Counted from the stretch's first letter, positions 5,801-51,113 are shown. The stretch is DNA of 64,000 nt from Macrostomum lignano (GCA_002269645.1 NIVC01002028.1:50886-114885), one strand, 5' to 3'. The notes: generated from the letters alone by a model not told the origin. Numbers and translations: made by a program.

Positions 5801-6856
5801 AGTCGTTATCTTCAATATTTTCTATAGGGTCAACTGCAGCAAAATACAGTTTACAGGTAATCAAATGGTCAACTTACCTTCAACGCGAATTTGGTACTTC
5901 TGGGAATCATTTCTTGCTGCATCTGACTGACAGAACCCTGACAGCTAGCAAGGAAGCTGTAGTATTTTATGCTTGGAATTTGCTTACAACAGCTTGTTAA
6001 TATCTGCCTCACAGGAGCACTCATTGCTCAACCAATCAGATTAGAGGTGAGGGGATAAGAAGGCGGGGTACGGGCTAAATTCGAGGGAGAAAAATGAAGC
6101 AGATCAGATTAAAGAAACATCAGTTGTTGCAAAGATGCTCAGGAACAGGCTTATGGAATGAATTTTTTCACTGAAGACTTTCCTGCAGTGAGAACGGCGG
6201 GGTCTAAAATGATTGGAGCGCCTCAGGGAAGGCGATGTGCCATGAGGTTTTTGGCACTGAGCCAAGCGTATGCTCCGTTCTCCCCTCTCGATGCCCGGCC
6301 CCCTGTTCCACTGGAGAATCTCTTCTGAAGACACTCAACATTTCCGCTTGAGAAAATCTTGCGTGTCTTTGACTGACAGAAAAATTAGGCAAACACCCTT
6401 CATCTCAGTCTGCCGTATTTCGGGCTGCTCCATACAAACAGTTGCCTGCCTTATAGCTTCGATTTTTTATGAGAAAAACATTTATAGTTTTCTGTCTGGT
6501 CTTGACACGCAAGGATTTTCTCTGATACTGCAGAAAGCCGGTATGATAGGCAAAGTGTTTTGAATAACTAGGGCTTTAAGCAGATTGTGTTTCCATGAAA
6601 TTCTGCAGCTGGTCATTTCAACTGAATCGCGTCATTGTTTTACTGAGTTCTTCCAAAAACAAAAGGTGAAAGTAGTTCATAAAAAATAGATTTCCTCAGG
6701 TTTCTATTTCAAAATCTTTATCTCGCTACTCTTTTCGGTGAAGCAGTAGCAACATGCAAGAATAAGTTTATTTCTAGTTTTTTATGCTTGAATTTTCGAA
6801 AATACTGTTTAAACAAATGTTTTGAAGAATGGATTAAAAGTACACACTACCTCACA

Positions 6857-19398: not shown

Positions 19399-19831
19399 AA
19401 TATAACTCAAAACAGCCAATTAAAGCATGATAGAATATTGTGGATTAATGACCGCGAATAAGTGTGGAATAATGAAAAAAATAGTGTCGAATAATGACAT
19501 CAGTTGCGGACCGGACATAAGTGTTCATACAATGCGCTTACGCTAGGCTCCGAGCTAATAGCAAAACAAATATTTTATAGACTTTTGCCTATTGATTTCC
19601 AGTCTTTTAACTTTTATCTACTTCAAGTAGTGTCTAAAGCTCCTGTAGCAACGAAGAAAGTCGGGAAAATCTGTTTGTTAAAAACGGTTACTGGTTTACA
19701 ATAGACCTTCGGCAGGTAGTGCGGTGTCCGCTGCCAGCTATATACCAACTCCAAATCTAAAATAAAAAATAGAAATTAGTTGTAACGTTTAGTTAATTAC
19801 GTTTTCAAAACTACAAAATCAATAGATTATA

Positions 19832-22051
19832 CTATGACTGCAAACACGGAAGCAAAGCAAAAACTTGCAATTTAATTCTCAGCTCCTGTTGCAGACGATT
19901 GAGAACTGGCTGACGCTGCAGTTTCTCCACGAATATCTGCACCAGGTTGGAGTCGTCGCAGAAGGCGGCGCACACTGCGAGTTCCTGAATGTCGGCGCTT
20001 TCACTCCAAGACACCTCTTGGAACCAGTGTCTAACGCTTACGTCATCGGGTGTCAGCAGAAGTCTCAGACTCTGCAGCAGTGCGTCGAAATTGACATAGA
20101 AGACCGCATTTTGAGTGTAGCTGTCAACGTCAAATGGAAAGTACTCTGCAATGACTTTAGGTAGAAATGGCAGCTCGGGGCGTTGATCAAATCGGAAGCA
20201 GAATTTCCATGCCGAGTCAACGCTAAGCAAATGCTGCCACACGTCTTCCTCTGTTGCTTCAATTGCTAAGTTCTCTGCAGACCAGGTTATTCCTCTGCTC
20301 ACGTTGTGCCGCCTACAGGCACTCAAAACCTTTTGTGCTCCATCTCTATCGTCGAATTTTAGACAGATCATCGCCCTGAGAGCCTCGCGAGCTGTCCGAG
20401 CGCAGTCCGGGAGCCTGTCAATCATTTGCATGAGCGTCTGTCGGGAATCTGGCGATTCAGATATCCGCTGCTGAGATAATTGAAGCAGTGACCATCCCAC
20501 TACATCATAGATCTCGTGATACTCAAGCTCTGGGTTTTCTGTCTGAATGGATTGAAGTCTCAGTTCCGGTAGAATTTGAAAAGGGTGAAAGTAAAATACG
20601 CCCGATTCGTTGACCGGTCGAAGCGTTCTTTGAAATTTCAGCAAGATCTGGGGCAGCTTTTCAATTACATCCCTCAAAACATTCGTAGCACTTTGAATTG
20701 TTTGTGTCATTGCACCGGAATGGCTCGGACCCAAGCCCTTCAAGTACAAACCAGCGTTGCACAGGAAAAAGTGCTCCATGATTCGACCATCCACATTGTC
20801 CACCGTGCAGTTTTGTCCGATGCTGTCAAGAAGCATCTGCAGCGATCGTCTTATTAGACTCACGAAATTCTGCGGTCTCCATTCCTCAGCCGGCGTCTCC
20901 TCCAACATTCTGAAAGTGATTGTCTTTGCGTGATATGCTTTTAGCCCCTCGAAATTGTAGCCGTCTTTGCGGCAAATTACTTTCTTAACCAAGTACTTCA
21001 GAGTGACGAATAGCTGGCCCTGTAACGTGCTGAGACCTCTTAGCAGCAGTTTCTCCAGGAAAGTTGTGCTGACACGAAGCTGCTTTCCCGCTTGTCTAGG
21101 TGGTGCCGCGTGCACCACGTGACAGGGTGACTTGCTGAGCTCGCCTTGAAGTGTATTCAGAACGGACGGAGAAATATTTGAGCTAGAGATTCGATGCGTC
21201 AGCAGCGGAGCGATTGGCGGATAGCAGCAGACGCGGCATGCGTCAACTTCATCTACTGCAGGTCTCAATGGTGTGCCACTTGAGGCCTTTGCCGGATTGG
21301 TTGCTGTTTTAACGATAAAGATTATTAAATGTCTTATAAGCTTTTATGAGATCATGCTTTCATATTGGAACTTTTTAACTGAACAATTGGATAACAAATT
21401 AGATTTAGTGAACTGTTTGGTACAATATGGTACTGGAGCAAAAGCACAGAGAGTCAGTCGCACAAACTGAATTATGTCTACTTGTGTGCTGATTAAAAAA
21501 CTCTGGCCTGGTTATTACTTCCTGTGCATGCGAGTTGGTACGAGTACCATAAGCATTGCTTTCACAGATTGGGCCTACACTGCGGCTTTAAGCGTGAATC
21601 CAGACTGAGCATAGTCCTGTTATATGAAAAGACCTCCGCGATAATGCCCATGACGCCGAGACCCTTATGATATTCCAATTTAATAAACAGCTGCTTACCA
21701 AAGCCCCCAATTCGAATATGACCATCCTTGCAGTCGACCAGCTCCTTTTCTTTTCGATCGCAGCATTGGCAACTACCTCTGATGTGGTAGAGTCGACCCT
21801 GAAACAGCTTCATCACGTCAATGTCAGACTCCGCGTCCGTTCTCCCGTCCGCTTTGGTCAGGCTGTTGCCCCAGCCCTCTGAGTAGCTGCCGACAATATA
21901 GATCCCTGGGAATGAGTCTCTCCTGCTTCGCAAAATTCCCTGCAATGCGTCGGCAACTGCAGCCTGCAAGGCGGCTCTGGCTTTAACAAATCCGGCTTTT
22001 GTAAGCGTCGATTGAAGCAGCAGACTGAGTTCCAATTCACTCGGCATCGAC
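19832..22051 (-). CDS. Mab-21/cGAS-like receptor (cGLR) nucleotidyltransferase, copy 1; exons 22051..21699 and 21303..19832; 606 aa from ATG 22047; intact C-terminus, ankyrin part lost
   Basis: VGSYSEG and ESDIDVM catalytic motifs, third acidic residue in VDEVDAC, LRVSTTFLEKLL, LKAYHAKTITF...EEW, MEHFF. Donor TTTG|GTAAGC (phase 1) joins acceptor AAACAG|CAACC in frame. Confidence 0.85.
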
Positions 22052-22811
22052 CTGAAGAAAATATTTTATTTATTGCATTCTGACCACATACTACTCGTAG
22101 CGTTTCCATTCCCCACTTTCCGTCCCGTTCAGTCTACTAATTTTGCTATTTGATTGTCTCTTTCATTTTATAAAGTTCATTTTTTGCATTAGTTGCTTTA
22201 ATGCGTCGGGCATCGTTTCATTCCTAAACTATAAAAAGGACAATGACGAGGAAGACAAAATTAACCGAGCTAAAAGATGAGAGAATGCATAGAGCGAGAT
22301 AGAAAGACATAATTGAGCTTTTGGAAAAATACAGATTAAAACCAGAGAGAAAAATGTCTAGAAGGAGAGAAATCATCGTACACTAAAAAGAGCACATTGT
22401 GCATAGATCACGCACAAGAGGGACAGAGGTTGGAGTTCTAGAACTGGAAATGTACACTTGCAACAGCAAACAGTGCGTATTCTCGGTCAGTTGGCGAAAT
22501 GATCGTGTACAAAGTAAAATTGCAAATAGAGAACTTTCTTCAACAGCCTAATGAGAATTTTTTTATGTTGCTTTTAGTAGCTCCAGTGCTTCTTCCGCCC
22601 TAGTACGAGCGTAATGCCCACGCATGCATGTTGACGGCAGCAATTACACTAAGCTGAAGCCGCGTAGCCAGCGAAACAACTAAATACTTCAACAAACCGC
22701 TTTGAGAAGCACTTCTAAATGCCATTTGGATTCGAAAATTAGGGGGCTCTATTTCATTTTATGTACAACGTCGCTCTATTTTAATATAAAAACTCATATT
22801 CGAACTCTTAC

Positions 22812-23263
22812 TCTGACTCTGACAAAGCCGCACGATCCTGATGAGTAAGTTGATGCTTAGCCTTTTCTGTCTCAGACTCAAGAAACGGTGATTCATATTG
22901 TGTCTGAATAGTTTGTTCCAGCAAGGCAGCAACTCGGTGATGTCCATTGACGCTTGCAATTAGAAGGGGAGTCTCACCAGTAACAGTTCTTGCTTCAACG
23001 TCAGCATGCGCCCTGACGAGGGACAACACCACGCCATAGTGACCGTTCTGCGACGCGATGTAGATTGGCGTGCAGCCTTCGGAGTCTTTGAGCTTGAGCG
23101 TTTATGAGTGAGTCAAATAGCTCATGGTAACCATTCTGTGACGCAATAAAGAGCGGAGACAGCCCCGTGTCAGTTTGCAGATTAACGCTTGCTTGCGCTT
23201 TTAGGAGCAAACTAAACACAGCATGAGGGCCTAGTTGCGACGCAATGTAAATGGGCGAGCCGC
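22812..23263 (-). pseudogene. 3' remnant of the ankyrin-repeat exon (copy 1)
   Basis: Matches the last about 3 ankyrin repeats of 53976-55870; 11-bp deletion (CATTGACGTCA) causes a frameshift; homology stops abruptly at 23263. Confidence 0.9.
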
Positions 23264-23430
23264 ATGTGCATTTCCGTTTGTTTTGCTTGTATAATGAAAG
23301 TTTTGATCATGATGCGAGACTTCTGAGAATATTTTACTCTATTCGCATCAAATGCATTGTTTGCATTTTTCGATCATGTTATTTAAAGCCAGAATTCACT
23401 TCACCAACACGAATTGTTATTCATTAGTTT
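23264..23430 (+). repeat. About 170-200-bp repeat, inverted partner at 32206-32403
   Basis: TGCATTTCCGTTTGTTTTG...CACCAACACGAATTGTTATTCATTAGTTT is the reverse complement of 32206-32403 apart from an indel of about 37 bp. Confidence 0.85.
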
Positions 23431-23954
23431 ACACACCAGCTCATGATTCTACTGAGTCATTTTGTGACTAGCTGGATCCATGCCTAAAATGAGCCTTCGA
23501 TTTTAGCTTTGCTGCTAAATAAACTTTCTGTACGTCGAGTAAGTCAGACTGATGTTTTGCACTGATGTTAAAAAAATTAATGTAAATTTTATTGCTTGCT
23601 GCAATACAAATGATTGGCCTTAATAAATGAGTACTTGAAATGCTGAGTAAATTGCTCAGCTTGAATGAATCAAAGCTGCGGGTCTCTAGACCGCATATAC
23701 CAATGCTAATGAATTGAATAATTTGGAACTCAAAACTCAAAAAAGATTTTAAGCTTTGTCGGTATTAATTTGGTCAGGTACAAAATTAATTCCAGAGCAG
23801 TTAATATTATATATTTCAGCCAACAATAAAGTACATAGTTAGCAACTACGAATATTCAGATTGAGTCCCAGAGTTGAAATCCGGCAATCATGGGCGGTGT
23901 CCGGTCCGTGTCCGAGGTCAGTGGGTGCAGCGGAGTACCTGCCTGCAAGTCTAC

Positions 23955-24185
23955 TTACTTGCCAATGAGCCTCAACATAGTTCTGGCAACCCTCCCCCAC
24001 CTGATCCGGAATTTCTTCTGCAGCTCCGCGGCCTTCTCATCCGTCATCTCCGGCTCGTCCATGTCGGCCAGAGCCTCCAGCGCCGCCATCGCTTTGGCGT
24101 CCTCCTCCGACATCTCCTGGCTGCTGGGTCTGGCGGCGGCCAGAGCTGCGCACAGCAGGAGTCCGAGAACGAACTGCCACCTCAT
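23955..24185 (-). CDS. Secreted peptide precursor (76 aa): signal peptide, acidic propiece, KK, FRIRWGRVARTMLRLI, GK; candidate amidated antimicrobial/bioactive peptide, copy 1
   Basis: Hydrophobic N-terminus MRWQFVLGLLLCAALAAA; 12 D/E in the propiece; dibasic site; C-terminal G-K; GC-rich coding-like sequence; upstream TATA box; AATAAA on the minus strand near 23590. Confidence 0.8.
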   Translation of the reverse strand: MRWQFVLGLLLCAALAAARPSSQEMSEEDAKAMAALEALADMDEPEMTDEKAAELQKKFRIRWGRVARTMLRLIGK

Positions 24186-24282
24186 GATGAACTTGTAGCT
24201 GTAGCCTGATGAAGCTGAGAAGCTGGAGTAGAGTTATCTAGCCTTGGCTGCTTGGTTGTCCGCTGGGCATCCAAGGACCCTG

Positions 24283-24290
24283 TATTTATA
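24283..24290 (-). promoter_or_regulatory. TATA box of peptide gene copy 1
   Basis: TATAAATA on the minus strand about 100 nt upstream of the ATG. Confidence 0.65.
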
Positions 24291-24946
24291 GTGTAGAAAT
24301 CAGCACGTTTTTCCGGTCGCTGGAACGCGGGGGGTCCGCTGTGTCCCCTTCACGTGCTCCGGTCTTAAAAAAATTCCTTCAATGGTTAAACCCTAACCTC
24401 GACCTAGCCATCTATTGGCTTTATTGTCCATTCTCCACTCATTGCCAAGGCCCTGAGGGAATTGAACTTGAATGCTATTGGCCTTATTCTTTGACAGTCC
24501 ATTCGAGAGTAGCTCAGCTTTGCATTGAATTTGTTGCCTGCATGCAATGTATTATAGATAGCACTTATTGAGCTTCTCAAGTAGTTTCAGGACTATAGCT
24601 AAAATTGCGCTCGTTTGAGTCGCAACATGCCCAGTGGTGCTAGCTGGTCTGGGGAGTTATGAGCAGCAGGCTCTTTTGTTCTCAACTGAAATTGCTATAA
24701 GAGTTCGCAGTAGAGTTCAATGCTACGTTTGGACTTGGGCGTGTTTTCAAACTGTCTACTTAAAAACTTATTTACAACTTGCAGGGTCGCTTGGTTTATA
24801 GATTAACTGTGTGAGCTGAAACCAGTTTGAACCTGTGTTATCTATTTTTTATCGCGTTTGTATGCACGTTTTAATTATACTCTTCTGTTCCGAAGATTTA
24901 AACCACATATATGTACCAATGAGTGCAGTTTTTTTTAAATGGCCAT

Positions 24947-25100
24947 ATATACTCAGATACCATATGCTCAGATATTATATGCTCAGATATCATATGCTCA
25001 GATACCATATGCTCAGATATTATATGCTCAGATATCATATGCTCAGATACCATATGCTCAGATACCATATGCTCAGATACCATATGCTCAGATACCATAT
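24947..25100. repeat. 15-bp satellite (GATACCATATGCTCA)n, left part before the LTR insertion
   Basis: About 10 units, interrupted at ATAT by the LTR element. Confidence 0.95.
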
Positions 25101-25638
25101 TGTAGTGTGAGCATCTTTGCGTTTATTTTGTTGTAAATTGACTGCATTAGTTTCTCTCCGTTGAACGGTCGGTTCGGCAGGGCTCTCGTTTGAGAGTAGG
25201 TTCTGGTTTAGGCCAGGGGTTAGGAGTCTTCTCCGTGGTCCTGTGTTCGGTGCCTCTTTCTTCTTCAAGCTAAGATCCGCTTGTCAGTGCGTATATAATC
25301 ATTATTTATTAACCGTTATTATCGTTTTGTCAACTCTAGTTATCGCGTCGTTTGTCTAAATCTTGTAACTCAGCTAATCAAATTAAACCGTCTAGCCAAT
25401 TATCAGTTGTATCACATAGGATTATCACTCTCTAAATCTTTCGGTTTGTGTTTCCTCGTGTTCTTTATTTTCTTGTACTGTACCTGCGGCTATTGGAGAA
25501 GACTGGTAGAACTCGCCGACCGGCGATAGGCGATTAGGATTAATAGCTTTAAAATCTCCGAACGCTCCAAGTAGGTTTGTCTAGGGCCTAAATAATTGCT
25601 CACCGTGCATGCTATTATCTAATTGCCTATTTATCACA
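25101..25638 (+). repeat. 5' LTR (538 bp)
   Basis: TGTAGTGTGAGC...TATTTATCACA; no difference from 28867-29404 noticed by eye. Confidence 0.95.
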
Positions 25639-25640
25639 AG

Positions 25641-25658
25641 TGGAGCCCCTGGGAATCC
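25641..25658 (+). promoter_or_regulatory. Putative primer-binding site
   Basis: TGGAGCCCCTGGGAATCC starts 2 nt after the LTR; its complement resembles a tRNA 3' end (CCA plus T-arm). The tRNA is not assigned. Confidence 0.55.
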
Positions 25659-26163
25659 AATAGTTAGCAGGCGGCAGTTTATTGGTAGGCGCTCTAAGTG
25701 AGCAAGCTGAGACTAAAATTCAACGAGTCTGTTCCAGGCTCGTAGCGGCTATTTCGTCAACCACGCAGTGTGCAGCAATTCCGCATTAGGTGTGGTTTTG
25801 CGGTTGGCCAGTTACCCCAAAATACTGAATAGGATTTAGGAGTGGGAAAAATAAAATTGACTTTCTAAACTCAAATTAGCACTTTAATAGAAACTTGCGT
25901 GTGAAAGTAGATTTTGTTTACAGTTGAAAATTTTATTAGTGTTTATTAGCATAGTCTGCGAGTGCGCGCACTAGAGAGTACATTGGTTGAATTTGTCTCA
26001 GTGTACATTCAGTTTTTCTTATCAGTTATTGCCAGTGCGAGCGAGGCGACCGATTCCGCTCATTAGATAAAATAGAAAGCTAGATCATTGAAATTGTTAT
26101 AGCTTTACAAGTTGTACTTTCTGAAGTTGCAGTAATAGAAATTCCAATTGGTTGACACTTAGC

Positions 26164-27396
26164 ATGGCGCAAGACGGAGAAAATAGTCAGGAATCGAAGT
26201 CAGTTGAGATTAGGAACGAAGGCGAAGTAGATGAGGCCGAACATTTGAGAACAGTAGTGAGAGAACTGCAGGATCGCATAAGAAGAATGGAAACCGAAAA
26301 TCCTGAACCTAGAGTGATTTTGAAGTCGCATAACAGCGTAGCAAAGCCCAAGCCATACCGACTTGGCTCAGATTTCGAATTGTTTCTAAGAATCTTCAAC
26401 AACTACTGTCAAGGCAACAGTATAGACGAATCGGCTAAAGTGTATCAACTATTGTCGCTCCTAGACGAAGACGCCTACAAGGTTTACATTAACTTAGGCC
26501 TAGCGAGCACCGAATCATTTGAAAGCATCGAAAAGACTTTAAAGGACAAATTTAAGCCCGTAGGACAGAAGGAAGAAGCGAAGCTAGAGCTGATGAACCG
26601 CAAGCAGAAGGAAGACGAATCATTAGAAGAATTTTACGACGCATTAGTTGAATTAGTTAGGAAAGCAGGACTAGAGAGTCAGGCTAGAGAGCGAGTTTCT
26701 GAACGATTTGAAGCCGGCATAGCAAATTATAAAGTCAGGCGCGCAGTTATTGCCTATCGTAGAACCCATGAATCGAAGTATCAGACTCAAGATTTATTGA
26801 CTGCAGCTAAGAATGAGGAGATCCTCGAAGAACTCGCAAACCCAGGTAGCCAAAAGAATAGAAGGAAGCAGGAGGGCTCAAATACTTTGACAGCTCAAGT
26901 AGAAAAAGAGCAGAAAAAGCCAGCACCCAGCGCGGACCAAGGCCACCAGTCATTTGGACCTCAGTTTGCTTCCCCGAGCAATTATCCTTCGCAGTACCAA
27001 CCGTACCAGAATTATCAGCCTCAGTTCGACTACAGGCAATGGCAACCTAGGTTTGCCCATAGACAAATGAACCCAAGCTATAGGCCACAGGCACCAGTGC
27101 AGCCTCAGAATAGCTTCCGGCCACAGCATCATATGAGCAGCTACTCAAGACCCTATAATAGGCAGTCTTCGCCTTTTGTCAGGCCCGCCATGACACGCCC
27201 GCCACGCTTTGGTCACGAGGCCGGAGGGGCCAATGACAGGTTCAAACCTTCGGGGGCGAACGCGCCAAATGCGAGAAAGGCCTGTTATGAGTGCGGCGAA
27301 GAAACTCACCTGGCTAGAGACTGCCCAGTTAGACGAAATTCTTTAAACTACCGACGGGGCGGCACCAAGGGAGGGCCAACCGCCCCCAGCCACTAA
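26164..27396 (+). CDS. gag: Retrotransposon Gag (capsid-like domain, Q/P-rich linker, CCHC zinc knuckle), 410 aa from ATG 26164
   Basis: ORF inside the LTRs; capsid-like segment QKEDESLEEFYDALVELVRKA; knuckle CYECGEETHLARDC (CX2CX4HX4C). Confidence 0.93.
   Translation: MAQDGENSQESKSVEIRNEGEVDEAEHLRTVVRELQDRIRRMETENPEPRVILKSHNSVAKPKPYRLGSDFELFLRIFNNYCQGNSIDESAKVYQLLSLLDEDAYKVYINLGLASTESFESIEKTLKDKFKPVGQKEEAKLELMNRKQKEDESLEEFYDALVELVRKAGLESQARERVSERFEAGIANYKVRRAVIAYRRTHESKYQTQDLLTAAKNEEILEELANPGSQKNRRKQEGSNTLTAQVEKEQKKPAPSADQGHQSFGPQFASPSNYPSQYQPYQNYQPQFDYRQWQPRFAHRQMNPSYRPQAPVQPQNSFRPQHHMSSYSRPYNRQSSPFVRPAMTRPPRFGHEAGGANDRFKPSGANAPNARKACYECGEETHLARDCPVRRNSLNYRRGGTKGGPTAPSH
27342..27386 (+). 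promoter_or_regulatory. -1 programmed ribosomal frameshift signal
   Basis: Slippery heptamer T TTA AAC (27342-27348) in the correct gag phase; 7-nt spacer TACCGAC; 7-bp GC stem GGGGCGG (27356-27362) pairing with CCGCCCC (27380-27386). Confidence 0.8.
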
Positions 27397-27947
27397 ACCG
27401 ATTCACTCCCAATAGAAGAGCTGCAGCAGTAGAGGACCAGCAAGACAGCTCAGTCAATGTAGAATATGGCAACTTAGTTTGGTACAATTATTACAGAGGC
27501 TACGGATTTCTGCGAGATAACGATAATAGAGATATATTCTTTCATGTGACTAATACTAATATAGCAACTGATTACGAAATTATGCATTTTCTGCGCCAGA
27601 GGGCGACAGTAAAATTTATTCGCACTAACGATACTACTCATAGTAGGAAACAGAGAGCGGTCAATGTTAAAATTTGCTCAAGCGAGGAACGCAGATTAGC
27701 AGAAATTGACAAACAGAAGTCAGCGAGCTTAGCTAGACAGTCAGAGGCGTTGACAGAAGAATTAGAGAAACGAAGCGAAGCTGCAGCAGCTCAGAGAAGT
27801 GCATTAAACAGCATAGACTTGCGACTTAGTGAAGTAGAAGGAAAGAAAGCTTCAGCAGACGAATCTAAGGTAGTAAAAGAATTATCAGATCTAAGAACCG
27901 AATTGAAGGACTTGCGCCAATGCTTGGCTGGAAAGGAAGTTCACTAG
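27348..27947 (+). CDS. -1-frame ORF (199 aa): cold-shock domain plus coiled coil; predicted Gag-CSD fusion of about 594 aa
   Basis: Frame is open from just after TAG 27330-27332 to 27947. It translates ...YGNLVWYNYYRGYGFLRDNDNRDIFFHVTNTNIATDYEIMHFLRQRATVKFIRTNDTTHSRKQRAVNVK..., with CSD RNP1-like RGYGFL, RNP2-like IFFH and terminal AVNV, then a heptad-rich K/E/L segment. Confidence 0.78.
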   Translation, partial: LPTGRHQGRANRPQPLNRFTPNRRAAAVEDQQDSSVNVEYGNLVWYNYYRGYGFLRDNDNRDIFFHVTNTNIATDYEIMHFLRQRATVKFIRTNDTTHSRKQRAVNVKICSSEERRLAEIDKQKSASLARQSEALTEELEKRSEAAAAQRSALNSIDLRLSEVEGKKASADESKVVKELSDLRTELKDLRQCLAGKEVH

Positions 27948-28850
27948 AGCCGGCGTCCTGGACACGACGTTAAACTGCGACCGCTAGGGAAGACGGAATG
28001 ACATTAACCAGTGCTTGTCCTGGGCACGACAGAAAACTGCAGCCATTGGGCGGTGAATTTCGCCACGGGGATTGGTCCTGGGCAAGACCATAAACTGCAG
28101 CCAATGGGCGATAGTTTTCGCGCGCTGAGTGTTAGTCCGCCACGGGAGCGTGGGTGGAACTTTATTATCGTCGAGGCATCCAATTAGAGATAAGCGTCGT
28201 GGGAAATTGCGATAAGAATTCCGCTGTGGAGACAGCGAGGGTCGTAGCGCCCACCCTACCTTTTTAGGAGGGGGGAGGTGCGGATAGTTAAATCAGCGAG
28301 TAATAAAATTTTGCCAGCCGATAAGGTTCATCTTGGCACGTCGGAAGTGTGTAATTTGATTAACTTGTGTAAAATGCGTCAACGCGTTATTTGTTCTTGG
28401 TGATGGGTAGCATGCGTTTTGCTTTAAGTTTTCGATTGTAGAAAGTCGTGCCATAGTTTGCGTAAACGTTGCGTTCCGTCGCGATTTGTTTCGATTTATT
28501 TATTGATTTGCTTGTGTTTGTCGTGCCGCGTATTGAATAGTAGCTTTGCTTATGTATTTGATTGCGTTTTGCCGTGTCATAGAATTGTATTTGTGTTCTT
28601 GTTTGCGTTTCATTGTCGCGTCATGTTTTGCATAGTGAATTACGTTGTGTTCCCATTTGCGTTTTTTTTTCCCAGTTGCTATAGTTATACCCTTGTTATA
28701 TTGCTCTTGTTCTTGAATTTTGAAATTTGCTTTCCGCGAATGCGTTCCGTGCTGTACTGTACCAACTTGCTTACTAGGAGTAGTATGTCGTGAATATGAC
28801 GCAAATTTTCATTTGTTGTAAAAGTTTTTTCTTCTTTTGTACTCTATTTC

Positions 28851-28866
28851 TTTTAGGAGGGGGGAG
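28851..28866 (+). promoter_or_regulatory. Polypurine tract with upstream T-run
   Basis: TTTTAGGAGGGGGGAG immediately precedes the TG of the 3' LTR. Confidence 0.9.
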
Positions 28867-29404
28867 TGTAGTGTGAGCATCTTTGCGTTTATTTTGTTGT
28901 AAATTGACTGCATTAGTTTCTCTCCGTTGAACGGTCGGTTCGGCAGGGCTCTCGTTTGAGAGTAGGTTCTGGTTTAGGCCAGGGGTTAGGAGTCTTCTCC
29001 GTGGTCCTGTGTTCGGTGCCTCTTTCTTCTTCAAGCTAAGATCCGCTTGTCAGTGCGTATATAATCATTATTTATTAACCGTTATTATCGTTTTGTCAAC
29101 TCTAGTTATCGCGTCGTTTGTCTAAATCTTGTAACTCAGCTAATCAAATTAAACCGTCTAGCCAATTATCAGTTGTATCACATAGGATTATCACTCTCTA
29201 AATCTTTCGGTTTGTGTTTCCTCGTGTTCTTTATTTTCTTGTACTGTACCTGCGGCTATTGGAGAAGACTGGTAGAACTCGCCGACCGGCGATAGGCGAT
29301 TAGGATTAATAGCTTTAAAATCTCCGAACGCTCCAAGTAGGTTTGTCTAGGGCCTAAATAATTGCTCACCGTGCATGCTATTATCTAATTGCCTATTTAT
29401 CACA
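28867..29404 (+). repeat. 3' LTR (538 bp)
   Basis: Copy of 25101-25638 followed by the TSD ATAT. Confidence 0.95.
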
Positions 29405-31678
29405 ATATGCTCAGATATCATATGCTCAGATACCATATGCTCAGATACCATATGCTCAGATACCATATGCTCAGATACCATATGCTCAGATACCATATGC
29501 TCAGATTCCATATGCTCAGATACCATATGCTCAGATACCATATGCTCAGATACCATATGCTCAGATACCATATGCTCAGATACCATATGCTCAGATACCA
29601 TATGCTCAGATATTATATGCTCAGATATTATATGCTCAGATACCATATGCTCAGATACCATATGCTCAGATACCATATACTCAGATATTATATGCTCAGA
29701 TATTATATGCTCAGATACCATATGCTCAGATACCATATGCTCAGATATTATATGCTCAGATACCATATGCTCAGATATTATATGCTCAGATACCATATGC
29801 TCAGATACCATATGCTCAGATACCATATGCTCAGATATTATATGCTCAGATATTATATGCTCAGATACCATATGCTCAGATACCATATGCTCAGATACCA
29901 TATACTCAGATATTATATGCTCAGATATTATATGCTCAGATGCCATATGCTCAGATGCCATATGCTCAGATACCATATGCTCAGATACCATATGCTCAGA
30001 TACCATATGCTCAGATATTATATGCTCAGATACCATATGCTCAGATGCCATATGCTCAGATACCATATACTCAGATATTATATGCTCAGATACCATATGC
30101 TCAGATATTATATGCTCAGATACCATATGCTCAGATACCATATACTCAGATACCATATGCTCAGATACCATATGCTCAGATACCATATGCTCAGATATTA
30201 TATGCTCAGATACCATATGCTCAGATACCATATGCTCAGATACCATATGCTCAGATACCATATGCTCAGATATTATATGCTCAGATACCATATGCTCAGA
30301 TACCATATACTCAGATATTATATGCTCAGATATTATATGCTCAGATACCATATACTCAGATACCATATGCTCAGATATTATATGCTCAGATACCATATGC
30401 TCAGATACCATATACTCAGATACCATATACTCAGATATTATATGCTCAGATATTATATGCTCAGATATTATATGCTCAGATACCATATGCTCAGATATTA
30501 TATGCTCAGATACCATATACTCAGATACCATATGCTCAGATACCATATGCTCAGATACCATATGCTCAGATATTATATGCTCAGATACCATATGCTCAGA
30601 TACCATATACTCAGATACCATATACTCAGATACCATATGCTCAGATATTATATGCTCAGATACCATATGCTCAGATACCATATGCTCAGATACCATATAC
30701 TCAGATACCATATGCTCAGATATTATATGCTCAGATACCATATGCTCAGATACCATATGCTCAGATATTATATGCTCAGATACCATATGCTCAGATATTA
30801 TATGCTCAGATACCATATGCTCAGATACCATATGCTCAGATATTATATGCTCAGATACCATATGCTCAGATATTATATGCTCAGATACCATATGCTCAGA
30901 TATTATATGCTCAGATACCATATGCTCAGATATTATATGCTCAGATACCATATGCTCAGATATTATATGCTCAGATACCATATGCTCAGATATTATATGC
31001 TCAGATACCATATACTCAGATACCATATGCTCAGATATTATATGCTCAGATACCATATACTCAGATACCATTTGCTCAGATATTATATGCTCAGATACCA
31101 TATGCTCAGATACCATATGCTCAGATATTATATGCTCAGATACCATATGCTCAGATATTATATGCTCAGATACCATATGCTCAGATATTATATGCTCAGA
31201 TACCATATGCTCAGATACCATATGCTCAGATACCATATACTCAGATACCATATGCTCAGATACCATATGCTCAGATACCATATGCTCAGATACCATATGC
31301 TCAGATACCATATGCTCAGATATTATATGCTCAGATACCATATGCTCAGATATTATATGCTCAGATACCATATGCTCAGATATTATATGCTCAGATACCA
31401 TATGCTCAGATACCATATGCTCAGATACCATATGCTCAGATATTATATGCTCAGATACCATATGCTCAGATACCATATGCTCAGATACCATATGCTCAGA
31501 TACCATATGCTCAGATACCATATGCTCAGATACCATATGCTCAGATACCATATGCTCAGATACCATATGCTCAGATACCATATGCTCAGATACCATATGC
31601 TCAGATACCATATGCTCAGATACCATATGCTCAGATACCAAATGCTTAGATATCACATGCTCGGATACCATATGCTCA
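29405..31678. repeat. 15-bp satellite (GATACCATATGCTCA)n, unit 1 main array
   Basis: Period of 15 bp with variants GATATT-, -ATACTC-, GATGCC-; source of the artefactual 570-810 aa ORFs. Confidence 0.98.
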
Positions 31679-37592: not shown

Positions 37593-38102
37593 AAACCCGA
37601 GCCACTTCCAGATGCTCCTAGGCTCAATTGGCTTGGAAAATGCTATAATTTCGCACTTTAAAGTGTGAAATAATGACAAAATAGTGTCGAATAGTGACAT
37701 CAGTTCCGGGCATACAATGCGCTTACACTAAGGCTGCGAGCTAATAGCAAAAAAAATAGTTTATAGACTTTTGCCTATTGATTTCCAGTCTTTTAACTTT
37801 AATCTACTTCAAGTAGTGTCTAAAGCTCCTTTAGCAACGAAGAAAGTCGGAAAAATCTGTTTGTTAAAAACGGTTACTGGTTTACAATAGAACATCGGCA
37901 GGTAGTGCGGTGTCCGCTGCCAGCTATAGACCAACTCCAAATCTAAAATAATTAGATGCAACGTTTCAAAACTACAAAATCAATAGATTATACTATGACT
38001 GCACACACGGAAGCAAGGCAAAAACTTGCAATTTAGTTCTCAGCTCCTGTTGCAGACGATTGAGATGTGGCTGACGCTGCAGTTTCTCCACGAATATCTG
38101 CA

Positions 38103-40205
38103 TCAGGTTGGAGTCGTCGCAGAAGGCGGCGCACACTGCGAGTTCCTGAAATCCTCACTCCAAGACACCTCCTGGATCCAGTGTCTAACGCTTACGTCAT
38201 CGGGTGTCAGCAGAAGTCTCAGACTCTGCAGCAGTGCGTCGAAATTGACATAGAAGACCGCATTTTGAGTGTAGCTGTCAACGTCAAATGGAAAGTACTC
38301 TGCAATGACTTTAGGTAGAAATGGCAGCTCGGGGCGTTGATCAAATCGGAAGCAGAATTTCCATGCCGAGTCAACGCTAAGCAAATACTGCCACACGTCT
38401 TCCTCTGTTGCTTCAATTGCTAAGTTCTCCGCAGACCAGGTTATTCCTCTGCTCACGTTGTGCCGCCTACAGGCACTCAAAACCTTTTGTGCTCCATCTC
38501 TATCGTCGAACTTGAGACAGATCATCGCCCTAAGAGCCTCGCGAGCTGTCCGAGCGCAGTCCGGGAGCCTGTCAATCATTTGCATGAGCGTCTGTCGGGA
38601 ATCTGGCGATTCGGATATCCGCTGCTGAGATAATTGAAGCAGTGACCATCCCACTACATCATAGATCTCGTGATACTCAAGCTCTGGGTTTTCTGTCTGA
38701 ATGGATTGAAGTCTCAGTTCCGGTAGAATTTGAAAAGGGTGAAAGTAAAATACGCCCGATTCGTTGACCGGTCGAAGCGTTCTTTGAAATTTCAGCAAGA
38801 TCTGGGGCAGCTTTTCAATTACATCCCTCAAAACATTCGTAGCACTTTGAATTGTTTGTGTCATTGCACCGGAATGGCTCGGACCCAAGCCCTTCAAGTA
38901 CAAACCAGCGTTGCACAGGAAAAAGTGCTCCATGATTCGACCATCCACATTGTCCACCGTGCAGTTTTGTCCGATGCTGTCAAGAAGCATCTGCAGCGAT
39001 CGTCTTATTAGACTCACGAAATTCTGCGGTCTCCATTCCTCAGCCGGCGTCTCCTCCAACATTCTGAAAGTGATTGTCTTTGCGTGATATGCTTTTAGCC
39101 CCTCGAAATTGTAGCCGTCTTTGCGGCAAATTACTTTCTTAACCAAGTACTTCAGAGTGACGAATAGCTGGCCCTGTAACGTGCTGAGACCTCTTAGCAG
39201 CAGTTTCTCCAGGAAAGTTGTGCTGACACGAAGCTGCTTTCCCGCTTGTCTAGGTGGTGCCGCGTGCACCACGTGACAGGGTGACTTGCTGAGCTCGCCT
39301 TGAAGTGTATTCAGAACGGACGGAGAAATATTTGAGCTAGAGATTCGATGCGTCAGCAGCGGAGCGATTGGCGGATAGCAGCAGACGCGGCATGCGTCAA
39401 CTTCATCTACTGCAGGTCTCAATGGTGTGCCACTTGAGGCCTTTGCCGGATTGGTTGCTGTTTTAACGATAAAGATTATTAAATGTCTTATAAGCTTTTA
39501 TGAGATCATGCTTTCATATTGGAACTTTTTAACTGAACAATTGGATAACAAATTAGATTTAGTGAACTGTTTGGTACAATATGGTACTGGAGCAAAAGCA
39601 CAGAGAGTCAGTCGCACAAACTGAATTATGTCTACTTGTGTGCTGATTAAAAAACTCTGGCCTGGTTATTACTTCCTGTGCATGCGAGTTGGTACGAGTA
39701 CCATAAGCATTGCTTTCACAGATTGGGCCTACACTGCGGCTTTAAGCGTGAATCCAGACTGAGCATAGTCCTGTTATATGAAAAGACCTCCGCGATAATG
39801 CCCATGACGCCGAGACCCTTATGATATTCCAATTTAATAAACAGCTGCTTACCAAAGCCCCCAATTCGAATATGACCATCCTTGCAGTCGACCAGCTCCT
39901 TTTCTTTTCGATCGCAGCATTGGCAACTACCTCTGATGTGGTAGAGTCGACCCTGAAACAGCTTCATCACGTCAATGTCAGACTCCGCGTCCGTTCTCCC
40001 GTCCGCTTTGGTCAGGCTGTTGCCCCAGCCCTCTGAGTAGCTGCCGACAATATAGATCCCTGGGAATGAGTCTCTCCTGCTTCGCAAAATTCCCTGCAAT
40101 GCGTCGGCAACTGCAGCCTGCAAGGCGGCTCTGGCTTTAACAAATCCGGCTTTTGTAAGCGTCGATTGAAGCAGCAGACTGAGTTCCAATTCACTCGGCA
40201 TCGAC
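38103..40205 (-). CDS. cGLR copy 2; exons 40205..39853 and 39457..38103; C-terminal frameshift allele; ankyrin part lost
   Basis: Same exons and motifs as copy 1. A net 7-nt deletion near 38150 replaces the C-terminal about 55 aa with a 16-aa tail. Confidence 0.75.
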
Positions 40206-40965
40206 CTGAAGAAAATATTTTATTTATTGCATTCTGACCACATACTACTCGTAGCGTTTCCATTCCCCACTTTCCGTCCCGTTCAGTCTACTAATTTTGC
40301 TATTTGATTGTCTCTTTCATTTTATAAAGTTCATTTTTTGCATTAGTTGCTTTAATGCATCGGGCATCGTTTCATTCCTAAACTATAAAAAGGACAATGA
40401 CGAGGAAGACAAAATTAACCGAGCTAAAAGATGAGCGAATGCATAGAGCGAGATAGAAAGACATAATTGAGCTTTTGGAAAAATACAGATTAAAACCAGA
40501 GAGAAAAATGTCTAGAAGGAGAGAAATCATCGTACACTAAAAAGAGCACATTGTGCATAGATCACGCACAAGAGGGACAGAGGTTGGAGTTCCAGAACTG
40601 GAAATGTACACTTGCAACAGCAAACAGTGCGTATTCTCGGTCAGTTGGTGAAATGATCGTGTACAAATTAAAATTGCAAATAGAGAAATTTCTTCAACAG
40701 CCTAATGAGAATTTTTTTATGTTGCTTTTAGTAGCTCCAGTGCTTCTTCCGCCCTAGTACGAGCGTAATGCCCACGCATGCATGTTGACGGCAGCAATTA
40801 CACTAAGCTGAAGCCGCGTAGCCAGCGAAACAACTAAATACTTCAACAAACCGCTTTGAGAAGCACTTCTAAATGCCATTTGGATTCGAAAATTAGGGGG
40901 CTCTATTTCATTTTATGTACAACGTCGCTCTATTTTAATATAAAAACTCATATTCGAACTCTTAC

Positions 40966-41417
40966 TCTGACTCTGACAAAGCCGCACGATCCTGATGAGT
41001 AAGTTGATGCTTAGCCTTTTCTGTCTCAGACTCAAGAAACGGTGATTCATATTGTGTCTGAATAGTTTGTTCCAGCAAGGCAGCAACTCGGTGATGTCCA
41101 TTGACGCTTGCAATTAGAAGGGGAGTCTCACCAGTAACAGTTCTTGCTTCAACGTCAGCATGAGCTCTGACGAGGGACAACACCACGCCATAGTGACCGT
41201 TCTGCGACGCGATGTAGATTGGCGTGCAGCCTTCGGAGTCTTTGAGCTTGAGCGTTTATGAGTGAGTCAAATAGCTCATGGTAACCATTCTGTGACGCAA
41301 TAAAGAGCGGAGACAGCCCCGTGTCAGTTTGCAGATTAACGCTTGCTTGCGCTTTTAGGAGCAAACTAAACACAGCATGAGGGCCTAGTTGCGACGCAAT
41401 GTAAATGGGCGAGCCGC
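40966..41417 (-). pseudogene. 3' remnant of the ankyrin-repeat exon (copy 2)
   Basis: Same truncation point and 11-bp deletion as 22812-23263. Confidence 0.9.
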
Positions 41418-41585
41418 ATGTGCATTTCCGTTTGTTTTGCTTGTATAATGAAAGTTTTGATCATGATGCGAGACTTCTGAGAATATTTTACTCTATTCGC
41501 ATCAAATGCATTGTTTGCATTTTTCGATCATGTTATTTAAAGCCAGAATTCACTTCACCAACACGAATTGTTATTCATTAGTTTA
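41418..41585 (+). repeat. Inverted-repeat left arm, unit 2 (partner 47222-47419)
   Basis: Duplicate of 23264-23430. Confidence 0.85.
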
Positions 41586-42108
41586 CACACCAGCTCATGA
41601 TTCTACTGAGTCATTTTGTGACTAGCTGGATCCATGCCTAAAATGAGCCTTCGATTTTAGCTTTGCTGCTAAATAAACTTTCTGTACGTCGAGTAAGTCA
41701 GACTGATGTTTTGCACTGATGTTAAAAAAATTAATGTAAATTTTATTGCTTGCTGCAATACAAATGATTGGCCTTAATAAATGAGTACTTGAAATGCTGA
41801 GTAAATTGCTCAGCTTGAATGAATCAAAGCTGCGGGTCTCTAGACCGCATATACCAATGCTAATGAATTGAATAATTTGGAACTCAAAACTCAAAAAAGA
41901 TTTTAAGCTTTGTCGGTATTAATTTGGTCAGGTACAAAATTAATTCCAGAGCAGTTAATATTATATATTTCAGCCAACAATAAAGTACATAGTTAGCAAC
42001 TACGAATATTCAGATTGAGTCCCAGAGTTGAAATCCGGCAATCATGGGCGGTGTCCGGTCCGTGTCCGAGGTCAGTGGGTGCAGCGGAGTACCTGCCTGC
42101 AAGTCTAC

Positions 42109-42339
42109 TTACTTGCCAATGAGCCTCAACATAGTTCTGGCAACCCTCCCCCACCTGATCCGGAATTTCTTCTGCAGCTCCGCGGCCTTCTCATCCGTCA
42201 TCTCCGGCTCGTCCATGTCGGCCAGAGCCTCCAGCGCCGCCATCGCTTTGGCGTCCTCCTCCGACATCTCCTGGCTGCTGGGTCTGGCGGCGGCCAGAGC
42301 TGCGCACAGCAGGAGTCCGAGAACGAACTGCCACCTCAT
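42109..42339 (-). CDS. Secreted cationic peptide precursor, copy 2 (identical protein)
   Basis: Same 76-aa translation as 23955-24185; TATA box at 42437-42444. Confidence 0.8.
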   Translation of the reverse strand: MRWQFVLGLLLCAALAAARPSSQEMSEEDAKAMAALEALADMDEPEMTDEKAAELQKKFRIRWGRVARTMLRLIGK

Positions 42340-43100
42340 GATGAACTTGTAGCTGTAGCCTGATGAAGCTGAGAAGCTGGAGTAGAGTTATCTAGCCTTG
42401 GCTGCTTGGTTGTCCGCTGGGCATCCAAGGACCCTGTATTTATAGTGTAGAAATCAGCACGTTTTTCCGGTCGCTGGAACGCGGGGGGTCCGCTGTGTCC
42501 CCTTCACGTGCTCCGGTCTTAAAAAAATTCCTTCAATGGTTAAACCCTAACCTCGACCTAGCCATCTATTGGCTTTATTGTCCATTCTCCACTCATTGCC
42601 AAGGCCCTGAGGGAATTGAACTTGAATGCTATTGGCCTTATTCTTTGACAGTCCATTCGAGAGTAGCTCAGCTTTGCATTGAATTTGTTGCCTGCATGCA
42701 ATGTATTATAGATAGCACTTATTGAGCTTCTCAAGTAGTTTCAGGACTATAGCTAAAATTGCGCTCGTTTGAGTCGCAACATGCCCAGTGGTGCTAGCTG
42801 GTCTGGGGAGTTATGAGCAGCAGGCTCTTTTGTTCTCAACTGAAATTGCTATAAGAGTTCGCAGTAGAGTTCAATGCTACGTTTGGACTTGGGCGTGTTT
42901 TCAAACTGTCTACTTAAAAACTTATTTACAACTTGCAGGGTCGCTTGGTTTATAGATTAACTGTGTGAGCTGAAACCAGTTTGAACCTGTGTTATCTATT
43001 TTTTATCGCGTTTGTATGCACGTTTTAATTATACTCTTCTGTTCCGAAGATTTAAACCACATATATGTACCAATGAGTGCAGTTTTTTTTAAATGGCCAT

Positions 43101-46100
43101 ATATACTCAGATACCATATGCTCAGATATTATATGCTCAGATATTATATGCTCAGATATTATATGCTCAGATACCATATGCTCAGATACCATATGCTCAG
43201 ATACCATATGCTCAGATATTATATGCTCAGATATTATATGCTCAGATACCATATGCTCAGATACCATATGCTCAGATACCATATACTCAGATATTATATG
43301 CTCAGATATTATATGCTCAGATACCATATGCTCAGATACCATATGCTCAGATATTATATGCTCAGATACCATATGCTCAGATATTATATGCTCAGATACC
43401 ATATGCTCAGATACCATATGCTCAGATACCATATGCTCAGATATTATATGCTCAGATATTATATGCTCAGATACCATATGCTCAGATATTATATGCTCAG
43501 ATACCATATGCTCAGATACCATATGCTCAGATACCATATGCTCAGATACCATATACTCAGATATTATATGCTCAGATATTATATGCTCAGATACCATATA
43601 CTCAGATACCATATGCTCAGATATTATATGCTCAGATACCATATGCTCAGATATCATATGCTCAGATACCATATGCTCAGATATTATATGCTCAGATATC
43701 ATATGCTCAGATACCATATGCTCAGATACCATATGCTCAGATATCATATGCTCAGATACCATATGCTCAGATATCATATGCTCAGATACCATATGCTCAG
43801 ATATCATATGCTCAGATACCATATGCTCAGATATCATATGCTCAGATACCATATGCTCAGATACCATATGCTCAGATACCATATGCTCAGATACCATATG
43901 CTCAGATACCATATGCTCAGATACCATATGCTCAGATATTATATGCTCAGATATTATATGCTCAGATACCATATGCTCAGATACCATATGCTCAGATACC
44001 ATATACTCAGATATTATATGCTCAGATATTATATGCTCAGATACCATATGCTCAGATACCATATGCTCAGATATTATATGCTCAGATACCATATGCTCAG
44101 ATATTATATGCTCAGATACCATATGCTCAGATACCATATGCTCAGATACCATATGCTCAGATATTATATGCTCAGATATTATATGCTCAGATACCATATG
44201 CTCAGATACCATATGCTCAGATACCATATACTCAGATATTATATGCTCAGATATTATATGCTCAGATACCATATACTCAGATACCATATGCTCAGATATT
44301 ATATGCTCAGATACCATATGCTCAGATATTATATGCTCAGATACCATATGCTCAGATACCATATGCTCAGATACCATATGCTCAGATACCATATACTCAG
44401 ATACCATATGCTCAGATACCATATGCTCAGATACCATATGCTCAGATACCATATGCTCAGATATTATATGCTCAGATATTATATGCTCAGATACCATATG
44501 CTCAGATACCATATGCTCAGATACCATATACTCAGATATTATATGCTCAGATATTATATGCTCAGATACCATATGCTCAGATACCATATGCTCAGATATT
44601 ATATGCTCAGATACCATATGCTCAGATATTATATGCTCAGATACCATATGCTCAGATACCATATGCTCAGATACCATATGCTCAGATATTATATGCTCAG
44701 ATATTATATGCTCAGATACCATATGCTCAGATACCATATGCTCAGATACCATATACTCAGATATTATATGCTCAGATATTATATGCTCAGATACCATATA
44801 CTCAGATACCATATGCTCAGATATTATATGCTCAGATACCATATGCTCAGATATTATATGCTCAGATACCATATGCTCAGATACCATATGCTCAGATACC
44901 ATATGCTCAGATACCATATACTCAGATACCATATGCTCAGATACCATATGCTCAGATACCATATGCTCAGATACCATATGCTCAGATACCATATGCTCAG
45001 ATACCATATGCTCAGATACCATATGCTCAGATACCATATACTCAGATACCATATGCTCAGATACCATATACTCAGATACCATATGCTCAGATACCATATG
45101 CTCAGATACCATATGCTCAGATACCATATACTCAGATACCATATGCTCAGATATCATATGCTCAGATACCATATGCTCAGATACCATATGCTCAGATACC
45201 ATATGCTCAGATACCATATGCTCAGATGCCATATGCTCAGATGCCATATGCTCAGATGCCATATGCTCAGATGCCATATGCTCAGATACCATATGCTCAG
45301 ATACCATATGCTCAGATACCATATGCTCAGATACCATATGCTCAGATACCATATGCTCAGATACCATATGCTCAGATACCATATACTCAGATACCATATG
45401 CTCAGATACCATATGCTCAGATACCATATGCTCAGATACCATATACTCAGATACCATATGCTCAGATACCATATGCTCAGATACCATATACTCAGATACC
45501 ATATGCTCAGATACCATATGCTCAGATACCATATGCTCAGATATTATATGCTCAGATACCATATGCTCAGATACCATATGCTCAGATGCCATATGCTCAG
45601 ATACCATATGCTCAGATACCATATGCTCAGATACCATATGCTCAGATACCATATGCTCAGATACCATATGCTCAGATACCATATGCTCAGATACCATATG
45701 CTCAGATATTATATGCTCAGATACCATATGCTCAGATACCATATGCTCAGATATTATATGCTCAGATACCATATGCTCAGATACCATATGCTCAGATACC
45801 ATATACTCAGATACCATATGCTCAGATACCATATGCTCAGATACCATATGCTCAGATACCATATGCTCAGATGCCATATGCTCAGATACCATATGCTCAG
45901 ATACCATATGCTCAGATACCATATGCTCAGATACCATATGCTCAGATACCATATGCTCAGATGCCATATGCTCAGATGCCATATGCTCAGATGCCATATG
46001 CTCAGATGCCATATGCTCAGATACCATATGCTCAGATACCATATGCTCAGATACCATATGCTCAGATACCATATGCTCAGATACCATATGCTCAGATACC

Positions 46101-50603: not shown

Positions 50604-51113
50604 AAACCCGAGCCACTTCCAGATGCTCCTAGGCTCAATTGGCTTGGAAAATGCTATAATTTCGCACTTTAAAGTGTGAAATAATGACAAAATAGTGTCG
50701 AATAGTGACATCAGTTCCGGGCATACAATGCGCTTACACTAAGGCTGCGAGCTAATAGCAAAAAAAATAGTTTATAGACTTTTGCCTATTGATTTCCAGT
50801 CTTTTAACTTTAATCTACTTCAAGTAGTGTCTAAAGCTCCTTTAGCAACGAAGAAAGTCGGAAAAATCTGTTTGTTAAAAACGGTTACTGGTTTACAATA
50901 GAACATCGGCAGGTAGTGCGGTGTCCGCTGCCAGCTATAGACCAACTCCAAATCTAAAATAATTAGATGCAACGTTTCAAAACTACAAAATCAATAGATT
51001 ATACTATGACTGCACACACGGAAGCAAGGCAAAAACTTGCAATTTAGTTCTCAGCTCCTGTTGCAGACGATTGAGATGTGGCTGACGCTGCAGTTTCTCC
51101 ACGAATATCTGCA

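Follow-up and report, generated by a model that had tools for sequence, protein, structure and literature searches.

What does a long terminal repeat (LTR) retroelement that lacks pol encode in the frame where its Gag-Pol fusion should begin, and where did that frame come from? The question is raised by a 4,304-bp LTR retroelement inserted at positions 25101-29404 of a 64,000-nucleotide stretch of Macrostomum lignano DNA (GCA_002269645.1, NIVC01002028.1:50886-114885), here called the window, from whose first letter the positions in it are counted. A preliminary description of this locus had proposed that pol was replaced by an RNA-chaperone module, a cold-shock domain (CSD) plus coiled coil, entered from gag by -1 frameshifting. 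We compared the element with sequence, domain and structure databases and with relatives that carry a full Pol. Our results make it highly probable that this element is non-autonomous, inserted recently and arose by internal deletion within a rare Ty3/gypsy-type family, in which a CSD followed by a helical segment starts Pol and is reached by a -1 frameshift.

The CSD in the -1 frame is confirmed as genuine by a Pfam match above the gathering score (PF00313, E = 3e-7, 30.6 bits, gathering cut-off 27) together with the predicted fold. The AlphaFold2 model of the window protein, with a mean pLDDT of 83, consists of a five-stranded barrel (pLDDT about 90) and two long helices. When this model was submitted to Foldseek, the top 40 matches in the PDB were all cold-shock or Y-box CSDs, with TM scores of up to 0.82; TM is about 0.8 to CspA, CspE and YB-1. 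Solved Csp and YB-1 chains were also matched by phmmer against the PDB, and the models of the window protein and of a related database protein, P0012, gave Foldseek TM scores of 0.80-0.86 to CspA, CspB, CspE and Unr. The helical segment behind the CSD is predicted by the same model and is probably a coiled coil; its motif L(T/K)xE(N/L)E(K/R) is kept in the alignment of the family (alignment A1).

The open reading frame (ORF) in the -1 frame has 204 codons, 199 of them beyond the slip site, and fusion to Gag is predicted to give a protein of 395 + 199 = 594 aa in which ...RRNSLN is joined to LPTGRHQ. Its first ATG lies downstream of both ribonucleoprotein (RNP) motifs of the CSD, so that initiation within the frame would drop both of them. 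All sequence features in the preliminary description of this part of the element were confirmed, as was most of what it said about them: (i) gag ends in a CCHC knuckle that scores above the zf-CCHC cut-off, (ii) the phased T TTA AAC heptamer, the 7-nt spacer and the 7-bp GC hairpin are all present as described, (iii) the -1 frame has the expected layout, with a TAG at 27330, 199 codons and its first ATG behind the RNP motifs, (iv) the two checks that it had named for the CSD, PF00313 and AlphaFold, agree with it, and (v) its view that the CSD depends on frameshifting (it had also allowed splicing) is supported: only recoding could join the domain to Gag. Of the pairing of CSD and coiled coil, the domain stands and the long helices are predicted as well, but the coiled coil is no more than probable.

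The origin of this frame is addressed by two relatives with a fuller Pol, L001 and L002 (the latter with copies L006 and L007), which were found as short contigs in DNA metagenomes from brackish microbial mats of the Etang de Berre (PMC8605020). In L001, gag is followed by a -1 frame ORF that reads ...EYGTIAWYNIRLKYGFIWDANKRQIFFHF...RVSFVR...RAVQV... and continues into a short heptad helix, a protease (LIDTGASHCLL) and onwards. In L002 the order is gag, CSD, helix and DTGA protease, and then a 1,310-aa ORF for reverse transcriptase (RT), RNase H and integrase; Pfam matches are to Asp_protease, RVT_1, RT_RNaseH, Integrase_H2C2 and rve. The window CSD shares 35-38% amino acid identity with the L001 pol ORF and with L002/P0012 (blastp E = 8e-18), and the residues EYG, WY, YGF, D, R.IFFH, V.F.R, D, H, K.RA, V and C are invariant, among them all the RNP aromatic residues (including W, YGF and FFH) in the three lineages. 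The CSDs of L001 and L002 adjoin Asp_protease and score 26.9 and 20.5 bits against PF00313, both just below the cut-off of 27. The AlphaFold model of P0012 likewise shows the five-stranded barrel and a long helix, and its Foldseek TM scores are 0.82-0.86. Since L001 and L002 carry the same module in homologous position and frame and continue from it into the protease, the CSD-helix is not a substitute for Pol; the replacement of pol put forward in the preliminary description is contradicted by these elements, in which the CSD-helix directly precedes protease, RT, RNase H and integrase. As judged from this shared layout, the CSD-helix is an ancestral N-terminal transframe part of Pol, lying between nucleocapsid and protease.

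In the window copy, the rest of Pol is gone. With all L001 ORFs, the L002 protease and the 1,310-aa L002 pol as tblastn queries, no similarity to protease, RT, RNase H or integrase was obtained anywhere in the 64 kb at E <= 1, the matches being only to gag and to the CSD. The window -1 ORF stops where the protease DTGA would sit in the relatives: 90 residues separate the Cys that closes the CSD from the end of the ORF, and 86 (L001) or 90 (L002) separate the same Cys from DTGA. The simplest reading of these sequences would be an internal deletion that starts at the protease N-terminus, extends through the whole of the integrase and leaves a 3' untranslated region of 0.9 kb. Because protease, RT, RNase H and integrase are absent here and present in L002, the window copy is a defective, non-autonomous member of the family.

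The gag genes of the window copy and its relatives are homologous as well. Window Gag matches the Pfam profiles Retrotrans_gag (PF03732, 25.2 bits, cut-off 24.1) and zf-CCHC (PF00098, 23.8 bits, cut-off 20.8; residues 373-388, encoded at 27280-27327), and is 40% identical to the database protein P0001 and 42% identical to L002 Gag over the whole alignment, or 47% in the best local BLASTP alignment. It has one CCHC knuckle, against two in the relatives (P0001 and L002 Gag, alignment A4). At the place of the relatives' first knuckle the window protein has a remnant, RPPRFGHEAGG, and it has acquired about 80 aa of inserted Q/P/Y-rich sequence. A gag profile search of protein databases returned P0098, P0001 and P0099 only; a further locus, L005, is a 928-bp gag fragment and says nothing on pol.

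The cis-acting signals are likewise those of the family. The window has, in order, the LTR end, AG and the core TGGAGCCCCTGG of the primer-binding site (PBS), and L006 and L007 have the LTR end, CT and the same 12-mer; in L001 the LTR end and CT are followed by the 8-nt core TGGAGCCC. None of the tRNA sequences compared with the window PBS core matched it exactly, and no tRNA gene was found in the window. The polypurine tract (PPT) of L006, TTTTAGGAGGAGGAAG, abuts an LTR start, TGTAATG, just as the window PPT abuts its own. LTR termini, PBS core and PPT are thus common to the window copy and its relatives, and because PBS core and PPT are shared we consider the priming signals of the window copy to be those of the family; since they have been kept, a helper could mobilise this copy in trans.

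The insertion is young. Its two LTRs are alike at 538 of 538 positions (100%; divergence 0/538), both with TG...CA termini, and excising the element together with one ATAT of the target-site duplication restores the register of the 15-bp satellite into which it inserted. Furthermore, the segment 37661-43254 is 98.3% identical to the segment 19460-25100 and enters the same satellite, uninterrupted, without the element; this paralogue with an empty site indicates that the insertion is younger than the segmental duplication. The element copy is unique within the window. The identical LTRs and clean target-site duplication of the preliminary description were therefore recovered, as was its general reading of a young LTR element without pol. 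On the side of the relatives, L002, L006 and L007 come from three assemblies and, as copies of one another, show 99.4-99.8% identity, which suggests recent activity in their host.

How would the CSD-helix be expressed? Heptamers homologous and in phase with that of the window are found after the last knuckle of both relatives (L001, G TTA AAC; L002, G GGA AAC), and in all three elements the heptamer begins on the third position of a gag codon. GTTAAAC is a functional slip site in arteriviruses, and GGGAAAC is one in PEG10. The PEG10 frameshift is also mentioned in PMC7212762. The start of the -1 frame lies about 3 to 19 codons before the heptamer in the three lineages, the spacer (27349-27355 in the window) is exactly 7 nt in each, and a 6-7 bp stem occupies the same alignment columns. 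Across the three lineages 90.5% of the cells of this stem pair, compared with 33-52% in controls whose 3' strand is displaced by 1-3 columns, and three of the seven stem pairs have compensatory changes, altered on both sides, in an alignment of only three sequences. The conservation of spacing and stem provides good comparative support for a predicted stimulator of -1 frameshifting. A pseudoknot is also possible, as GGGAG in the loop might pair with CUCCC at about 27406-27410.

Several points weigh against our reading. First, the relatives represent, with the window, just three diverged lineages, and all of them are short metagenome contigs. Neither reference copy is perfect, as a change of frame interrupts the protease of L002 (1978-1983) and the RT/RNase H region of L001 (2773-4500) is broken into several frames. 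In addition, the term deletion derivative rests on a comparison with relatives that are just 35-47% identical to the window copy, and the window lineage has changes of its own, namely a helix about twice the length of that of the relatives, the loss of a knuckle and the Q/P-rich insert; some period of independent evolution is therefore possible for this lineage. The energy of the hairpin (-16.6 kcal/mol, z = 0.11 against shuffles) is ordinary for a G+C-rich stretch. Besides, the alignments used by AlphaFold contained cellular CSD proteins, which favors a CSD model, the Pfam match being independent of this.

Alternative explanations were considered for the role, the expression and the origin of the CSD-helix frame. 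The frame might be an inert leftover, the fusion playing no part in mobilisation and Gag plus the cis signals being enough; this we regard as unlikely, yet as a possibility to be kept in mind. Between lineages, the proportion of nonsynonymous differences (pN) is 0.29-0.43 in the CSD and 0.26-0.38 in the gag core, and that of synonymous differences (pS) is 0.71-0.86; as synonymous sites are saturated, pN and pS were contrasted in place of a dN/dS estimate. As in the gag core, pN well under a saturated pS indicates that purifying selection has maintained the CSD in the family. This selection concerns the family, however, and the intact -1 ORF of the window copy does not by itself demonstrate selection after the deletion, since this copy inserted recently and the window holds no second one; with identical LTRs, an open frame is silent on this point, as an inert leftover would have it. 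On the other hand, every part of the frameshift signal (slip site, spacer and hairpin) is intact, and the longer helix, the lost knuckle and the Q/P-rich insert suggest evolution with the frame open, although these changes could predate the deletion. Expression of the -1 ORF by splicing, by internal initiation at a GTG or ATG inside the CSD or from a subgenomic RNA appears very improbable: the thermodynamically ordinary hairpin and a frameshift predicted from sequence would leave room for such a route, but internal starts remove both RNP motifs, the phased heptamer, short -1 opening, spacing and stem recur in three lineages, and the heptamers of both relatives are known to slip in other systems. 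Least credible of all is that a captured fragment of a host cold-shock gene replaced pol, the CSD being an innovation of a pol-less lineage only, because the window arrangement of gag, CSD and helix without pol that would suggest it is, in L001, L002 and P0012, followed by protease, RT and integrase in homologous position and frame, and the family CSD is at most about 35-40% identical, over short stretches, to any cellular CSD.

Under the deletion-derivative reading, a working model can be proposed. Slippage at X XXA AAC, stimulated by a hairpin 7 nt downstream and situated just past the last knuckle, would produce Gag-Pol throughout the family, and in full-length relatives the slip product would be Gag-CSD-helix-protease-RT-RNase H-integrase. 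From the window copy most ribosomes would make Gag (410 aa) and a minority the 594-aa Gag-CSD-helix, a mini Gag-Pol. Its RNA would be reverse transcribed and integrated by the enzymes of an autonomous relative in the same genome, and the protease too would come from the helper. The CSD might act as a chaperone that binds single-stranded RNA or DNA in the particles, at Gag-Pol stoichiometry and beside the knuckles, where it could aid primer annealing, strand transfer or RNA capture, and the helix could oligomerise Gag-Pol, for example in the dimerisation that activates the protease. It is tempting to speculate, and we do so tentatively, that an animal-hosted Ty3/gypsy-type lineage fixed the first CSD of a retroelement and thereby internalised the role of a Y-box chaperone, and that pol-deleted parasites keep the module for the entry of their RNA into helper particles; this larger scenario is possible, but we hold it to be doubtful.

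Proteins and loci of this family are sparse in the databases searched. A word-indexed protein search matched nothing with the -1 ORF and one protein, P0001, with gag (40% identity). The missing matches to the -1 ORF are explained by gene callers, which omit the frameshifted N-terminus lying before the first ATG. An exhaustive phmmer search of 1.84 billion representative proteins with the CSD gave 96 matches, of which P0012 was the sole member of the family found; the other matches inspected were cellular proteins with a CSD, the majority of them with at least two. Neither the window gag, taken from either of its possible starts, nor a neighbouring ORF had an identical record. Scanning metagenome DNA with the CSD alignment yielded just two loci, both bacterial (L003 and L004), viral contigs yielded nothing and genome contigs six bacterial CSP loci. 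One database protein, P0076 (239 aa), has a single N-terminal CSD whose RNP2, IFFH, is as in the retroelement family, and behind it a knuckle of CCHC-like type, CFNCKKKGLHWIMQC, and a tail of acidic character; the protein may be related to the CSD module, either as a cellular protein or as a domesticated one.

The features of the element are collected in Table 1.

Table 1. Features of the retroelement, in window coordinates.
Feature	Position	Strand	Remarks
Target-site duplication, left (ATAT)	25097..25100	+	4 bp, within 15-bp satellite ATATGCTCAGATACC
5' LTR	25101..25638	+	538 bp, TGTAGT...ATCACA; TATATAA at 25292, ATTAAA at 25382
Primer-binding site (PBS)	25641..25657	+	core TGGAGCCCCTGG, 2 nt after 5' LTR
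gag	26164..27396	+	410 aa; capsid-like Retrotrans_gag domain, Q/P-rich insert, one CCHC knuckle
-1 frame ORF	27333..27947	+	opens after TAG 27330-27332, stops at TAG 27945-27947
Slippery heptamer T TTA AAC	27342..27348	+	X XXY YYZ phase with gag
Hairpin (predicted by folding)	27356..27386	+	7-bp stem GGGGCGG/CCGCCCC, 17-nt loop
Cold-shock domain (CSD)	27459..27674	+	five-stranded OB barrel; RNP1 RGYGFL, RNP2 IFFHV
Two long predicted helices	27681..27935	+	AlphaFold2 model residues 84-138 and 144-168; heptad-like Leu spacing
Repeat of ~58 nt, three copies, 3' untranslated region	27955..28121	+	two copies carry CAGCCA(A/T)TGGGCG
PPT, second copy upstream, TTTTAGGAGGGGGGAG	28262..28277	+	16 nt, 589 bp from PPT at 3' LTR
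Polypurine tract (PPT), TTTTAGGAGGGGGGAG	28851..28866	+	abuts 3' LTR start TGTAGTG
3' LTR	28867..29404	+	partner of 5' LTR
Target-site duplication, right (ATAT)	29405..29408	+	4 bp

Some details of the 3' region and of the surroundings may be added. The second copy of the PPT might serve as an additional start for plus-strand synthesis, or be the scar of a rearrangement. The T-rich block between the two copies (28278-28850, 43% T) was considered as a degenerate LTR and rejected, its local alignment score being equal to that of shuffles. Repeats similar to those of the window 3' untranslated region occur in the 3' region of L002 (CAGCCAATGAG, and CAGCCAATGAGAGTAAT at 6470-6521), and the two sets may represent a CCAAT-like cis element that members of the family have in common. 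L006 also holds, at 70-738 and upstream of its PPT and LTR start, a 222-aa ORF without a Pfam match; it shares no sequence overlap with the 3' region of L002 and may be an extra 3' ORF of the L002-type element or an assembly join.

Around the element, the window contains a tandem segmental duplication (19460-25100, 37661-43254 and 50672-54438; 97-98% identical), each unit of which has a Mab-21-like (cGAS-like) ORF of 439-478 aa, a 161-aa ORF without a Pfam match, the 15-bp satellite ATATGCTCAGATACC and a 32-bp satellite. Exons of an ASC/DEG-ENaC channel (8410-11026) and an ORF with ankyrin repeats (53972-55897) mark the host as an animal. On the minus strand, the ORF 13024-13488 matches HTH_32, HTH_48 and other helix-turn-helix profiles of Mos1-type transposases and is probably a Tc1/mariner remnant.

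Among known systems, the Ty3/gypsy elements (Metaviridae) and the derived gene PEG10 are closest in kind. They share with the family described here the TG...CA LTRs, the 4-bp target duplication, PBS and PPT, a Retrotrans_gag/PEG10-type capsid, CCHC knuckles, a -1 frameshift to protease-RT-RNase H-integrase and an H2C2 integrase, and the heptamer of PEG10, GGGAAAC, is also that of L002. They differ in that here a CSD and a long helix stand between nucleocapsid and protease, and in that the window copy is without protease, RT, RNase H and integrase. The closest layout is that of betaretroviruses, namely mouse mammary tumor virus (MMTV, p30) and Mason-Pfizer monkey virus (M-PMV), which make a transframe fusion of nucleocapsid and dUTPase. 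There too an accessory domain opens the -1 frame, is fused to the nucleocapsid and precedes the protease immediately; whereas that domain is an enzyme, the one described here is predicted to be a non-enzymatic OB fold that binds single-stranded nucleic acid, and the two are not homologous.

In its likely action, the module may come closest to LINE-1 ORF1p and to host Y-box proteins. ORF1p is a nucleic-acid chaperone composed of a coiled coil, an RNA recognition motif (RRM) and a C-terminal domain, and retroviruses use host Y-box proteins. By analogy with ORF1p, an oligomerising helix and a small domain for binding single-stranded RNA would act together on the element's own RNA, although ORF1p has an RRM fold instead of a CSD, another domain order and another element class, and shares no homology with the module. 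Lin28 and plant CSD/CCHC proteins also combine a CSD and retroviral-type CCHC knuckles in one polypeptide. In Lin28, however, the CSD precedes two knuckles in a single frame, and here the knuckle comes first and the CSD is connected to it through recoding only. The preliminary description had spoken of the Lin28 domain pair in reverse, and this holds as an analogy only: the family CSD profile matched bacterial Csp and Y-box sequences of the PDB equally well and did not list Lin28, and Lin28b appeared only at rank 39 in the fold search with the P0012 model.

Large retrotransposon derivatives (LARDs), terminal-repeat retrotransposons in miniature (TRIMs) and gag-retaining deletion derivatives resemble the window copy in having intact LTRs, PBS and PPT and no RT or integrase, and in needing a helper. 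LARDs and TRIMs are non-coding, in contrast to the window copy, which retains coding sequence for Gag and the first Pol domain as well as the frameshift signal. Accessory domains of LTR retrotransposons include the chromodomain of chromoviruses, AlkB in orchid Ty3/gypsy elements, a DnaQ exonuclease and an SF1 helicase (PMC9289625, PMC6338049). These cases are similar in that an uncommon additional domain, confined to one lineage, became fixed in the polyprotein or a further ORF and persisted through diversification; none of them is a CSD, and most lie at the integrase end or in separate ORFs and are not transframe. The fixation of extra protein domains in LTR retrotransposons is rare (PMC9289625), and two papers that discuss such domains do not have the CSD on their lists (PMC6338049, PMC9289625). 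Full-text literature searches, whose reach does not extend to Repbase and Dfam, found no description of a CSD in an LTR retroelement, in agreement with the earlier statement that no LTR family with this layout had been described. A CSD as an inherited feature of a retroelement family has therefore apparently not been described.

The known accessory domains (chromodomain, dUTPase, AlkB) have each exposed a point of contact between element and host. If our interpretation is true, the family described here would place a fold of single-strand RNA/DNA chaperones directly beside the nucleocapsid and at the stoichiometry of Gag-Pol, and would offer a natural system in which to ask what the transframe region of Gag-Pol does and whether a retroelement can encode a Y-box-like factor of its own. 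Domains of this kind precede the first ATG of the shifted frame and are missed by gene callers. The window copy, recent and cleanly bounded, is useful for studying what gag-only elements require for mobilisation in trans, and a CSD shared by a whole family is arguably of broader interest than one in a single defective copy.

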